Part shown: positions 8,201 to 39,127 of the stretch, in pieces
Layout: the number at the start of each line of letters is the position of its first letter
Position numbering within the stretch: position 1 is the first letter of the stretch
From: Dimorphilus gyrociliatus
Lineage: Eukaryota > Animalia > Annelida
Length of the DNA: 64,000 nt
Direction: 5' to 3'
NCBI GenBank assembly: GCA_904063045.1
Contig: CAJFCJ010000001.1
Location: 868,001 to 932,000, forward strand
Translations under genes and position numbers: made by a program
Notes under the pieces: generated by a model
The model's input: only the letters and a program-made list of their open reading frames with translations
What the model was told of the DNA's origin: nothing
The model's database searches: none

Positions 8201-10187
8201 GATGAAAAACAAGAAGTGTCCGATGACGATATGACTGCTTCAGTTAAAGTTAAGGAATCCAACTCTATAGTCATGAATATTAGAGTCAGTTATTAAATAC
8301 GTTATAAACTTATTATTAATTGTTATTCATCTGTAGAATGCTAGGCAGTTACCTGCTTTGACACCTGCTGAAAAAGCCCACTATGCTGCAACTTTAAGAT
8401 TACAGTTTCCTGTTTCCAGTGGCAATCAGCATCGAACGAAGGAGCACGAAGAAGTAGTACCTTCAACAGAAAACGTTCCAGGTGATGCAGACAAAGCTGT
8501 TGAAGATATTTTAGACAAAGAAAAATCTAGTGAAAGTCAAGTTGACAAGCCAGACGAACAAAACACAAATTTTTCAAATACTGAAACCAGCGTCTTCCCT
8601 GATGTTTCATCGGAAGTACGTTTCAATTATTACTTATTAATTAATCAATTTAATTTCTAAATTTATCTTTTTGTCTGATAGAAAGTGGATATATCAAAAG
8701 TAGTCGCTGAGAGGCTTTCAGCAATGAGAAAATTACAACAAAATCCAAATGATTCGCAAGCCATATCGGAAGTCTACAAATCTCAAGAGAAGGTATCTCT
8801 TTGGGCGCAATCTAAAAACCTACCTGGACAATTTTTAGGGAGTACAGGCGTTCAACCATTATCTGCAAAGGAATTAAGCGCCAATTCACATCAGGCTTGG
8901 CTGAAAAAGGTGAAAATTTTAGTGCTACTGGTTTAAAAAATGATTAATTTCAAAAAATAATCGTTTCCAAATATTTGGTATGTAAGAATAAAATTTGTTT
9001 AATCATTATGTATTACAACCAAGTATTTGGATGCGAAGGATGGCAAAAAGTTGGATACTGAGATAAAATATAAGAAGAAACTTGACTATTAGCCATCAAC
9101 AAAAGTAAGAAACATTCAAGCATAATTTTCTGACATAGAAAAACTATTTATTGAAAAATTATTGAAAAATAATTTATTTAAAAAGTTTTAACTAAAGACG
9201 CTTCACATTTCCTTCCCTCGCAAACGTTTATAAGAAGTATTACAAATATATCAGATTTTAGCTTATATAATTGAACAAAGCGAAGATATATAAATATATT
9301 ACATGAAAGTATATGAATAGAACGTTTATTCACTGAATAATATTTAATATTAATTGTAAGAAACTAGGAGTTTATAACAATTAAGTTAGTCGAAAATTAT
9401 GATTGAATATTTCGTCCTTTTTGAGAAAAATTCATGGAAATCTCTTAGTTAATCTTCATTTTGATGAAAATTGTTATTTAATGTCTATTAGATGGTAAGT
9501 CGAAAGGTATTTGAAATTGATGCTCTATTTTCAAAAAGTTTTTATTTTCCAGTTTAATCCTAAGATACATTGGCTTTTTATATTTAAGTTACTTATTACT
9601 ATACAGGACACTTTTTTGAAAGCTGGCCCCGTAAGAGGTGGAATAGGAAAAGCATTGCTATGCAAGATGGGTTGGCGGGAGGGTACTGGATTAGGTAGGC
9701 ATGAAGAAGGTAGCCTCGAGCCCCTTTTGTTAGATTTTAAAGTGGATAGAAAAGGTATGAAATATAAATTAATCGTTATTCTTTAATAACTAACGTTCAA
9801 TATCTTATTAGGGCTTAATACGGAAGGTGAAAGGAAAAGTAGTCAAATTCAGTCAGTCGCTCATAATTCAGCTTCTATCATGAAAGATTTGTCAGGTATA
9901 GCCGCTTCATCATTCTGGCCTAGATATTTTAATAATTCTGATATTAAAAAAATTTAGGAAAGCATCCTGTCTCTGCTTTGATGGAGCTTTGTACGAGAAG
10001 ACGATGGGGCGCACCCAATTTTGAGCTAGTCCAGCAAGGTGGCCCACCTCACAAGAAAAACTTTTTGTATAAAGTAATAGTAAATGGTGTAGAGTACGTT
10101 TCGTCTACTGGAAGCCCTAATAAAAAGAGTGCTAAGGCTCAGGCAGCTACTCTCGTCCTCCAAGAATTAGGTTTACTGCCAAAATAA
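5213..10187 (+). CDS. SON: SON DNA/RNA-binding splicing cofactor: K/E- and RD/RE/RS-rich low-complexity region, G-patch and C-terminal dsRNA-binding motif
   Basis: G-patch GIGKALLCKMGWREGTGLGRHEEGSLEP; DSRM GKHPVSALMELCTRRRWGAPNFELVQQGGPPHKKNFLYKVIVNG...KKSAKAQAA; SON-type blocks NLPGQFLGSTG and LRLQFPVSSGNQHR; RS exon after intron 7612-7668. The start is probably a split A|TG (see findings). Confidence 0.9.
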
Positions 10188-35529: not shown

Positions 35530-36207
35530 TTATTTCATTCCCATTATTTGCTTTATTCTATCGAGTCTAGTAACTAACAAATAAGCTGATGACAATCCAA
35601 ATCCAACAAGACCTCCTCTAGCACAACTTCTAAGGCCTCCTGACAACTTAAATAAAGTACCGGTAAGTGTAGCTGCAGCAACCGTATTCATTTCATCGTC
35701 AGCTCCTCTGACTTTTGATAAGATGACACCTATTCCACTGTACATAAAAGCAACGACACCAAGTGTTTGAGCAGTGGAAGCTCCTTGTTTCGTTACATAA
35801 TTCAAGAGTTGAGTTCGACGAATGGCTCCTTGTAATTGAGAAGTATTTGAAACTCCGCGAAATAAACCTGTAGTTGCTCCAACAACAGCTCCACCAAACA
35901 CGCTTCCACCAATTTGACTAAATGCCATCTCGAAACGACCTCTAGTGTGACTCTGTCCTTCAGGGAGAATAAACTGAGAGTCACCACCGACACCAAGAAT
36001 ACTTGGATCGACATTTAAGTATGGGGAAACAACAGACGAAGCTGGAGAAGAGGTAACTGAAAAATGACGTCGCATCGAAATTAGAGAACCGTACGCACTT
36101 AGAGAATCATTTTGATATTTTTGCTTACCTGGAACATTCATCATTGGATCGGAGGATGAATAGCCTCCAAACAAACTTCCAAATGTACCTTTATTTTCAA
36201 ACGACAT
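35530..36207 (-). CDS. TIMM23: Mitochondrial inner-membrane translocase subunit Tim23, single exon
   Basis: SPYLNVDP, FILPEG...RGRFEMAFSQIG, LLNYVTKQGA...LGVVAFMYSG, RGADDEMNTVAAATLTG. Confidence 0.93.
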   Translation of the reverse strand: MSFENKGTFGSLFGGYSSSDPMMNVPGKQKYQNDSLSAYGSLISMRRHFSVTSSPASSVVSPYLNVDPSILGVGGDSQFILPEGQSHTRGRFEMAFSQIGGSVFGGAVVGATTGLFRGVSNTSQLQGAIRRTQLLNYVTKQGASTAQTLGVVAFMYSGIGVILSKVRGADDEMNTVAAATLTGTLFKLSGGLRSCARGGLVGFGLSSAYLLVTRLDRIKQIMGMK

Positions 36208-37111
36208 TTTTTTTTATATTTAACTACGAAATGACTTAATTCAAACTGTCATGTGCTGTTGAGGAAGCGGAATATTTTCAAGGACAAATTAGACTGGTTA
36301 CCAGCTCAGTCTGGTTTCGGGAACTTTCGATCATTTTAGATTTTGTTTGTGATTAAAACTAAGCCATTAGGAATTGTAAGAATATAGAATTCAGTTAAAG
36401 GTAAATAAAGAATTCTTATTTATAAGAATGATTGTATAATGAAGATTAGTTTTTTTGTTACATAATCTGGAAAAATTATTTTATTAATTTTATAGATGTC
36501 GTTGACAATTCATAAATAAAACATATTAAAAATTGAGCTAATGTAATTAATAATGCTCACTCAAAGAAATAGAACGTCATATATATCTTACTATATCAGG
36601 CAATAAAGATTTTCAAACTATGACGTAAAAGAAACTAGCAAGTTAGGATAATGGATTTCGAAACAAAATCGATTGTTTTTGTTAGTCGCTAGCATTTATG
36701 TTCTTTATATTACCATTAAAAAAATCTGCAATTAGAACAGTTAAAAATTCAATCATATGTTCTAGATTTTAGTAGAGTTTCGTTAAACGACCTGGTGTTG
36801 AATACAAATCAGTAATACTGTGAACAAAAACCTTTTGGCTACAAAACACGTGGTACAAGTTTTCCCATAGTCAGAAAATTTATTGTCCCAGATCTTTAAC
36901 TCAAATCTAAGTCTACCTTGACCTTAATGTTATGAATCAGTATTTGAACTGAATGCAAGTACAGTTTGAGAATCTTATACGCCTTAGGGCTATTAATACA
37001 TGCTTGTTGCACATAAAACATCAACGTTGTTTTTAACTTAATTTATTGCATGATGTTGAATAAAGGAAAAAGTTTGTCCCTTCTCCCCCGAGCGATAAAG
37101 AGAGAAAATTA

Positions 37112-38820
37112 ATGAATGTAAAATGGGAGCATCTTGCCGCTGGAGTAAGTGGTGGAGTGTTATCAACTCTTGTCTTGCATCCTTTAGATCTCATAAAAAT
37201 ACGATTTCAAGGTTTGTACTAGTTTGATATTGGCTTAGTTACAAGAAAGAATAAAATCTAAAAATAATATATGAAGTACAAAATACGTCATTTTAAGGCC
37301 AATTTATAAAGAATTGATAATTCTTTCAGTTGATGAAGGATGGTCTACATTACAACGACCCCAATATAGAGGAATTTTACATGCAATAACTTCAATTGCC
37401 AGGCAAGAGGGATTGAGTGGACTATACAAGGGAGTAACTCCAAATGTTTGGGGTGCAGGATCCAGCTGGGGATTATATTTTTTATTGTAATTCATGATAC
37501 TCTTATCAAATTGAAAGCTAACAGCTTTTTTTATTAATTAGTTATAACTCCTTCAAATCACACCTTATGGAAAAGAACCAAGTTCAAACTCTCTCCGCTC
37601 CATCTCATATGCTAATTGCCAGCGAAGCTGGTTTGTAGCTTTCTATATTTTCCCTATTAAAAACAATACATATTATTTAATTTACCATTTAGGCTCATTA
37701 ACCTTACTTCTGACAAATCCAATATGGGTTGCAAAAACTCGTTTGTGTTTGCAATACGATGCTCTCGCAAGACCAACGATGGGAGAAAATAAACATACTA
37801 AATTTATACAGTATAGGGGATTGTTCGATTGCGTAAAAAAAATTTACAAACACGAAGGTGTTAAAGGCCTCTACAGAGGCCTGATACCTGGTTTATTTGG
37901 TGTTTCTCATGGTGCTCTTCAGTTTATGGCTTATGAAGAATTGAAAAAATTTTATAATAAACAAAAAAATGCCCCTCCCGATGCAAAATTTGTAAGTTTT
38001 TTTTTCAAATTTCATCTAAAGAAGCTATGTTTAACAAATTTATTTCTTTCTTGTAGACTTCTGTAGAATATCTAACTTTTGCCGCTCTTTCCAAAATCTT
38101 CGCTGCATCTACTACCTATCCATATCAAGTCGTGAGGGCAAGATTACAGGATCAACACAGGGAATATGCTGGAGTTATGGATGTTATTAGACAAACCTAT
38201 AAGTAAGTGTAATTTCCGTAATACTTTAGGTCTATCCAATATTTTAGGATATTAGTGATACAAACATCGCCTGTGTAAATCATTTTTCAGGTTGGAAGGT
38301 TTACGAGGCTTCTTCAAGGGACTATCACCTTATTTGTTACACGTTACTCCTAATATTTGCATTGTGTTTCTTGTTTACGAAAAAGTAACAAGCAGGAAAT
38401 GATTCTATAAATTGACCGAAAACATTTTTCTCGATCTGATTTATCGCTTTAGGAAATTTAAGTAATTGGGCGAGAGATCCAAGATGCAAAATAATATCGA
38501 AATAACTTTACTCTTTTTAAGTAAATTGTTTAGTTGTCTCCGTTGTTGGAGTAGATATCGTATACTCTCTAATAAAATACACTTATTACGTTGCGAAACA
38601 AAATGACTTGACTTTTAGAAATTATATTTATCAAAAAATTTATATTATGAAAAACTTCTACTGGCTAAATTATCTTATATATTTTTACAGGTTGGAAGGT
38701 ATAATCGGTTTCTATAAGGGCATAGTTCCAGCTTTGTTAAGAGTGACGCCTGCATGCTGTATAACATTTGTTGTTTATGAGAAAGTTTCTGATTTTCTAT
38801 TGAACAGAAATGAAACCTAG
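37112..38820 (+). CDS. SLC25A32: Mitochondrial folate/FAD carrier with two alternative last exons; an extra 5' exon is possible
   Basis: [96 protein letters not shown]. Confidence 0.93.
38291..38402 (+). CDS. SLC25A32: SLC25A32 alternative terminal exon A ([36 protein letters not shown])
   Basis: Acceptor ttttcag at 38284-38290; in phase with the donor at 38203; homologous to exon B. Confidence 0.85.
38571..38576 (+). terminator. AATAAA poly(A) signal candidate for the exon-A isoform
   Basis: Canonical hexamer about 170 nt after the exon A stop and before the exon B acceptor. Confidence 0.5.
38691..38820 (+). CDS. SLC25A32: SLC25A32 alternative terminal exon B, canonical form ([42 protein letters not shown])
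   Basis: Acceptor ttttacag at 38683-38690; same phase as exon A; [14 protein letters not shown] matches the vertebrate carrier. Confidence 0.88.
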
Positions 38821-38850
38821 TTTTTTTAATGTTTCCTCTAGTTACTTCAA

Positions 38851-38856
38851 AATAAA
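38851..38856 (+). terminator. AATAAA poly(A) signal candidate for the exon-B isoform
   Basis: Canonical hexamer 30 nt after the exon B stop. Confidence 0.45.
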
Positions 38857-39008
38857 ATGAATTTTTATATATATATGTCTAAATCGTATAGAGTACCTTA
38901 GAAACAAATATGCAATATATTTAGATATAGTATATTAAGATTAGTTCCAAATTACAGAATAGCTGAAAAGTATATAAAGTATTATGTTTAAAAAAAGAAA
39001 TGAACAAA

Positions 39009-39127
39009 AGAATACGGCACCCAGTGTTCCCAGGCGGTCTCCCATCCAAGTACTGACTGGGCCGTACGTCATTTAACTTCGGTGATCGGACGAGAACCGG
39101 TGCTTGTAACGTCGTATGGCCGTATAC
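39009..39127 (-). rRNA. 5S rRNA: 5S rRNA gene, single copy in this window
   Basis: Reverse complement GTATACGGCCATACGACGTTACAAGCACCGGTTCTCGTCCGATCACCGAAGTTAA...AGTACTTGGATGGGAGACCGCCTGGGAACACTGGGTGCCGTATTC followed by a TTTT Pol III terminator; box C intact; helices I, II and IV pair. Confidence 0.96.

Follow-up and report, generated by a model that had tools for sequence, protein, structure and literature searches.

The window analysed here is a 64-kb stretch of contig CAJFCJ010000001.1 from the annelid Dimorphilus gyrociliatus, and all coordinates are positions within it. On its plus strand, at 37112–38820, lies a mitochondrial carrier gene with five constitutive coding exons followed by two alternative terminal exons. 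Coding exon 1 (37066–37211, with the ATG at 37112) encodes helix 1 and its motif PLDLIK, and the junction 37211>37330 is found in a spliced contig; coding exon 2 (37330–37486) likewise has GT..AG junctions in the contig, and the joint between coding exons 3 (37542–37630) and 4 (37693–37991) is present in both of the sequencing runs described below. Exon 4 encodes helix 3 (PIWVAK) and contact point II on helix 4 (Gly-Val); exon 5 (38057–38202) encodes helix 5 (PYQVVR) and ends at the donor GT, 38203–38204, that both endings share.

The endings themselves are two homologous exons. Exon A (coding part 38291–38402, plus strand) opens after the acceptor AG at 38289–38290, stops with TGA at 38400–38402, and encodes a His-type helix 6 with the His codon cac at 38340–38342. 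Exon B (coding part 38691–38820, plus strand) opens after the acceptor AG at 38689–38690, stops with TAG at 38818–38820, and encodes an Arg-type helix 6 with the Arg codon aga at 38740–38742. Both begin cag|gttggaaggt in equal phase, the split codon AA|G encoding Lys, and the resulting isoforms A (300 aa) and B (306 aa) are identical to residue 264 and differ only in helix 6. Over 35 residues the two exons share 60% protein identity (tblastn E 2e-11), which, together with their match to the same part of the Mito_carr profile, argues that the likeness is not due to chance; tblastn found no third copy of the alternative exon within the 64-kb window.

Being adjacent and alike in phase and acceptor context, A and B are tandem-duplicated homologous exons. 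They are not internal exons spliced on both sides, as in a classical mutually exclusive cluster—they form an alternative-last-exon pair, each with its own stop and downstream AATAAA. The block 3' of the exon A stop (38403–38585, plus strand) is the probable 3' UTR of the A mRNA, with AATAAA at 38571–38576; the 3' UTR of the B mRNA (38821–38871, plus strand) has AATAAA at 38851–38856 and contig coverage to 38871. An earlier interpretation of this DNA from its letters (hereafter the sequence-only reading) had proposed two homologous last exons after the donor at 38203; all of the elements it named were found where it had placed them, and its exon A and B peptides were reproduced exactly.

Upstream, the gene has a 5' non-coding exon at 36141–36400 (plus strand) with a firm end, an approximate start, and a donor GT at 36401. 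The exon is based on the 255-letter loose end of a contig before 37061, which matches the window up to 36395; TAAAG, the five letters that come after, would suit either side of the joint, and an exon ending at 36400 is spliced to 37066. The contig over this exon may extend into the 5' end of the neighbouring gene, a single-exon ORF of the Tim17/Tim22/Tim23 family (35530–36207, minus strand, 225 aa, Pfam E 1.4e-21). The Tim17-family gene stands head to head with the carrier, whose 5' exon appears to reach into the 5' end of its neighbour; the two genes, both for mitochondrial inner-membrane proteins, may therefore share a promoter region or have promoters that overlap. In Haliotis, Capitella, and Lineus it is a V-ATPase subunit H gene that stands head to head with the carrier, and in Dimorphilus the Tim17-family gene is found instead. 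On the other side, about 140 nt beyond the poly(A) region of exon B and in the opposite orientation, is a complete 5S rRNA gene (39009–39127, minus strand; Rfam RF00001, 107.6 bits, E 1.2e-22).

RNA Evidence for Both Endings

Two public runs, X2 and X1 (the latter an RNA-seq library from a separate study), were mapped to 36700–38990, a region of 2291 letters. In run X2 a contig of 3055 nt spans exons 1–5 with the four constitutive introns gone at the predicted GT..AG sites; the removal of all four introns indicates that this run is RNA-derived. A separate X2 contig joins 38202>38291 (GT..AG) and extends to 38487, and another joins 38202>38691 (GT..AG) and extends to 38871. Run X1 contains the joint 38202>38691 as well, with 36 letters on the short side. 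The two junctions for which the sequence-only reading had proposed an RNA check are thus both present in spliced contigs, and its proposal that one gene gives rise to two full carriers through the choice of terminal exon is borne out by the gene model and both junctions. No joint from A to B occurs among the contig joints of X2 and X1, a set from which rare forms could escape.

Contig depths were 457 for A, 217 for B, and 474 for the constitutive part, values that cannot be read as isoform ratios; by contig depth, however, neither ending is a trace form. Coverage of the exon A contig ends at 38487, short of the AATAAA at 38571. Contig coverage stops between A and B; we infer that the A transcript has a poly(A) site of its own at which it ends. 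Run X2 also holds an unspliced contig at 36700–37087 (depth 63) that covers the intron separating coding exon 1 from the 5' non-coding exon; it could represent an alternative start, a retained intron, or a different transcript.

Carrier Identity and Fold

Isoform A is identical (100%) to the deposited Dimorphilus gyrociliatus protein DgyrCDS200, which carries the UniRef name Solute carrier family 25 member 32; isoform B, the Arg form, was not among the deposited proteins returned for Dimorphilus. The named relatives, drawn from annelids, molluscs, arthropods, one echinoderm, and vertebrates, all bear the name SLC25A32 or mitochondrial folate transporter, with 57–70% identity at 97–100% coverage. 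Dimorphilus gyrociliatus has this one SLC25A32-type gene (mitochondrial folate/FAD carrier), its transport role being assigned by homology. The substrate of SLC25A32 is itself disputed, folate having been set against flavin (PMC7611780).

The three repeats expected of the family are present: Pfam PF00153 (Mito_carr) matches isoform A in three stretches (226 bits, E 2.4e-68). Taken alone, exon A matches profile positions 58–89 of 96 (E 2.3e-6) and exon B positions 58–95 of 96 (E 1.8e-10), in both cases the part covering the second helix of a repeat. Helices 1, 3, and 5 carry the Px[DE]xx[KR] signature, PLDLIK in canonical form and PIWVAK and PYQVVR as variants; in 42 orthologues the Trp and Gln of these variants differ hardly or not at all. 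Helix 4 reads ...PGLFGVSHG and so contains the G[IVLM] motif, which by published rule marks a nucleotide-type contact point II (PMC9311062). In cross-repeat alignments of homologues the Gly of this motif falls at the position of the helix-6 Arg.

An AlphaFold model was built for isoform A only. It has six long helices (mean pLDDT 87.6, pTM 0.84), with a pLDDT of 92–94 in helix 6 (residues 275–298), and can be superposed along its entire length on human UCP1 (TM 0.81–0.83) and on the ADP/ATP carriers (TM 0.70–0.79).

Residues Exchanged in Helix 6

In the even-numbered helices of mitochondrial carriers the binding site comprises triplets 77, 80, 81, 84, and 85, and prolines are common at triplets 76 and 83 (PMC7611780). 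In either exon type Pro stands at −4 and +3 relative to the His/Arg (position 0); these prolines correspond to triplets 76 and 83, which fixes the register and places His/Arg at contact triplet 80. In an exon-level alignment the Arg of exon B also falls on the Arg that UCP1 and UCP2 have in helix 6. Residue equivalence was taken from the exon alignment and the proline register; full-length phmmer searches against the PDB put the repeats out of register.

To compare the two types we assembled 109 His-type and 109 Arg/Lys-type segments from two full-length homologue searches; a word-index search with the His-type C-terminus alone had given just 9 candidates. Classes were set by the position-0 residue alone, and classes set by motif regex gave identical discriminating columns. 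At five positions of helix 6 the two types have no residue in common across the 218 segments. At triplet 77 (position −3) the His type has Tyr and the Arg/Lys type Asn, Ser, or Gly; at triplet 80, the contact point, His stands against Arg or Lys; at triplet 84 (+4) Asn against Ala; at triplet 85 (+5) Ile against Cys or Thr; and at triplet 88 (+8) Val against Thr. Four of these five triplets are published even-helix binding-site positions, and leaving aside the position that defines the classes, the fraction is three of four (hypergeometric P 0.005). When every partly discriminating column was put into a helical-moment test, the result was not significant, with 747 to 1569 of 5000 permutations reaching the observed value.

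Since the discriminating columns fall on binding-site triplets, the switch would replace the helix-6 wall of the pocket and not a single residue, and the view that the two isoforms have different substrate pockets is well supported by these alignments. The sequence-only reading had described an exchange of Arg for His at the helix-6 contact point. The alignment to UCP1 and UCP2 and the prolines at triplets 76 and 83 uphold that placement, and the swap is real; it is, however, not confined to His and Arg, as a set of pocket positions changes with it.

Selection on Exon A and the Block That Follows

The transcript of a close relative (L009, 90% protein identity) served as the comparison sequence. 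Exon A differs from it at 12 nucleotides and one amino acid, the last residue, giving dN 0.012, dS 0.67, and dN/dS 0.018; for the constitutive exons dN/dS is 0.059. Judged by these ratios, exon A is under strong purifying selection. Across a wider span, the His exons of annelid and spider share about 80% identity, and both exon types are maintained under purifying selection. The sequence-only reading was to be abandoned if exon A proved unused in RNA or if it evolved neutrally; it is used, and a dN/dS of 0.018 is not that of a neutral sequence. Exon A was also considered as a pseudo-exon, a candidate rejected by the spliced contigs together with the dN/dS value.

The block of 183 nt at 38403–38585 is 84.5% identical to the relative, compared with 59% at third codon positions, 81.3% over the coding sequence as a whole, and 50% beyond 38585. 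Conservation ends about 10 nt past the AATAAA at 38571, as would suit an A mRNA whose 3' UTR is under constraint; the block may be a 3' UTR or an element in the choice of splice or poly(A) site. RNA folding of 38403–38585 showed no unusual stability (z 0.26).

Age and Distribution of the Two Exon Types

The same layout recurs in the mollusc Haliotis rufescens, where A precedes B and the intron lies at the identical codon position. There the His exon is 1.3 kb after the penultimate exon and the Arg exon about 5.7 kb further, and the RefSeq isoforms X1 (His) and X2 (Arg) are 100% identical upstream. In the flies Drosophila simulans and Ceratitis capitata, no intron divides the His-type coding sequence from the exon before it; where the ancestral intron lay there is an internal donor, TGGAG|GTACGA, which leads to an Arg exon about 0.9–1.9 kb downstream (positions 8354–8488 and 9367 in D. 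simulans, L010; 10133–10267 and 12146 in Ceratitis, L011). By this comparison Diptera have lost the ancestral intron before exon A and kept both endings; the choice in these flies lies between using the internal donor and reading on. In the His version the dipteran donor AG|GTACGA is read as Arg-Tyr codons, so that one set of nucleotides is both coding sequence and splice site. For Ceratitis, deposited proteins of both types exist and are 100% identical upstream. The sequence-only reading had suggested a His/Arg pair in Drosophila (CG8026), and such a pair is indeed found in the genomes of D. simulans and Ceratitis.

Public gene models in which the two endings are fused, in A-then-B order, exist for Anopheles christyi, the copepod Tigriopus, Cotesia congregata, and Trachymyrmex zeteki; with their doubled helix 6, these models (P0250, P0213, P0233, P0300) are likely annotation errors. 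His-type proteins were found in Capitella, Paralvinella, many bivalves, gastropods, and many insect orders, and among other arthropods in crayfish, millipede, scorpion, spiders, mites, and ticks. The vertebrate sequences returned are all Arg-type, and exon B is 77% identical to the gar orthologue segment over 31 columns.

In an exon tree of 52 segments all His-type sequences split from all Arg/Lys-type sequences with 98/98 support. The tree rests on 31 columns and its inner branching is unresolved, and the deep split is consistent with one origin of the two exon types. As both types are shared, the duplication predates the split of annelids and molluscs from arthropods. The exon tree and dN/dS analysis suggested by the sequence-only reading thus separated the types and showed constraint on exon A (dN/dS 0.018). 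Its phrase "ancient protostome switch" holds insofar as the pair occurs in molluscs, insects, and a copepod, with the His-type exons forming a single group; it needs qualifying in that some lineages have only one exon type in the gene. No Arg-type exon was found in the gene of the tick Rhipicephalus (about 6.4 kb searched downstream) or in that of Capitella (about 4.9 kb searched downstream), and no His-type exon was found in this gene of the nemertean Lineus or the sea urchin Diadema. Tropilaelaps has the His exon, its contig ending 1.5 kb after it.

The Lys-type protein of Nephila pilipes (P0284) is 92.5% identical upstream to one Trichonephila His-type protein, and two Trichonephila His-type paralogues (P0153 and P0154) are only 82% identical to each other; these identity patterns suggest that spiders retain the alternative ending and have duplicated the gene. 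The freshwater mussel Sinanodonta woodiana has at least seven paralogues of 322 aa in one 90%-identity cluster, whose representative (P0034) has a helix 6 like the His type with Gln at the contact point (QSVPNICIVF); two members of the cluster have locus tags adjacent to that of an Arg-type gene.

A Proposed Explanation and Its Alternatives

The explanation that we favour is that of a two-ended SLC25A32 gene. Exon 5 is spliced to the proximal exon A or, with A skipped, from the same donor to the distal exon B, the products being two complete six-helix carriers; the proximal 3' splice site and poly(A) site would compete with splicing to exon B, and the outcome would set the ending. The two exon types would have arisen once, before annelids, molluscs, and arthropods diverged. 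The switch would exchange the helix-6 wall of the binding site and leave contact points I and II constant. On this proposal the Arg form would be the vertebrate-like carrier, and the His form, without a fixed positive charge, might accept a flavin- or folate-type substrate that is less negatively charged or differently shaped, or might bind in a pH-dependent manner. A difference between the isoforms in substrate selectivity or in charge/proton coupling is suggested by three features taken together—the changes are non-conservative, they are invariant within each class, and they lie in the binding site. We consider the explanation as a whole, including such a functional difference, to be rather probable. 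A narrower version, in which the isoforms divide the disputed activities of SLC25A32 between them, flavin cofactors against reduced folates, or in which one of them is proton-coupled, is offered as speculation and is on the doubtful side.

Several observations speak against a functional split. The isoforms have contact points I and II in common and could thus transport identical substrates; vertebrates, sea urchin, and nemertean have only the Arg type in the gene, so that for some animals the Arg form is sufficient; and the helical-moment test gave no significant result. The main alternative is that both isoforms carry the same substrates and are set apart by kinetics, regulation, or tissue use alone. 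A precedent has been reported in the A and B forms of the mammalian phosphate carrier SLC25A3, and the existence of one-type lineages and the common remainder of the protein agree with it. Purely kinetic or regulatory divergence sits less easily, however, with swaps that are fixed by class and non-conservative (the charge at the contact point is lost, Asn becomes Tyr, and Ala becomes Asn) and that fall mostly on published binding-site triplets. We regard this alternative as possible, though not what we would expect.

It could also be supposed that the His isoform does not transport at all and has a regulatory or other role. One of the two spliced isoforms of Drosophila CG4241 is inactive in reconstitution (PMC7504413), and Arg or Lys is the rule at the contact point among the relatives found. 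However, in the stretches searched the tick and Capitella genes carry only the His exon, so that in these animals the His form would have to serve as the carrier unaided; its conservation from annelid to spider, the dN/dS value, and the normal carrier fold of the model likewise make a non-transporting protein improbable.

High conservation of the 183 nt after the exon A stop, at 84.5% against 59% for third positions, raises the idea that selection has acted mainly on the alternative 3' UTRs, through stability, localisation, or translation, with the coding differences secondary. This is very improbable, given that the class-specific residues are invariant across phyla, that Diptera changed the exon layout yet kept both coding versions, and that RNA folding predicts nothing stable for the block. 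Splicing noise and a duplicate in decay can both be practically discounted as accounts of exon A, since the contig depth of the exon is similar to that of the constitutive exons, the deposited protein model is isoform A, and the exon is conserved across three phyla with a dN/dS of 0.018.

For the two-ended carrier gene that we favour, the interest lies in the age of the switch, in the pocket positions that are swapped, and in the open folate-versus-flavin question for SLC25A32. The discriminating positions are a small, defined set of residues for swaps in transport assays, and isoform-specific genetics is possible in Drosophila. If the activities do split, protostomes would hold a natural pair of pockets pinpointing the residues that decide between folate and flavin recognition. 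There is a consequence for annotation as well—among the deposited Dimorphilus proteins only the His isoform turned up and not the vertebrate-like Arg isoform, and several public arthropod models wrongly fuse the exons.

Comparison with Known Systems

Vertebrate SLC25A32, the human protein included, is the orthologue of the Dimorphilus gene, with about 60% identity over the full length, a shared PIW motif on helix 3, and a helix 6 almost identical, in the vertebrate sequences returned, to that of exon B. Those sequences differ in having the Arg type only, and the sea urchin gene likewise yielded no His-type exon. The same His/Arg pair is present in RefSeq as X1/X2 entries named "mitochondrial folate transporter/carrier-like" from molluscs and insects, which are automatic and uncommented. 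These entries, and the existence of homologous alternative exons in carrier genes such as that of the phosphate carrier, are already known; a full-text literature search found no published description of His/Arg isoforms of the SLC25A32 carrier. A review of Drosophila mitochondrial carriers omits the folate/FAD carrier altogether (PMC7504413).

Two Drosophila genes offer partial parallels. The isoforms A and B of CG4241 (dPCoAC) differ in transport assays, dPCoAC-B being inactive (PMC7504413); this too is a mitochondrial carrier gene with two spliced isoforms, although it belongs to another carrier subfamily. For the immune receptor PGRP-LC, a choice of alternative homologous 3' exons changes the ligand-recognising part and is governed by competing RNA pairings (PMC6191721). 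The carrier differs in that no such RNA structure is predicted in its block (z 0.26).

A further parallel among mitochondrial carriers is SLC25A3, the phosphate carrier, in which the mutually exclusive homologous exons 3A and 3B give two carriers that differ in kinetics. In both genes tandem homologous exons change one membrane segment of a mitochondrial carrier. The SLC25A3 exons, however, are internal, lie near the N-terminus, and belong to a vertebrate gene, whereas those of Dimorphilus are terminal, each bringing its own stop codon and its own poly(A) signal, and the helix 6 that they encode has a changed contact-point residue.
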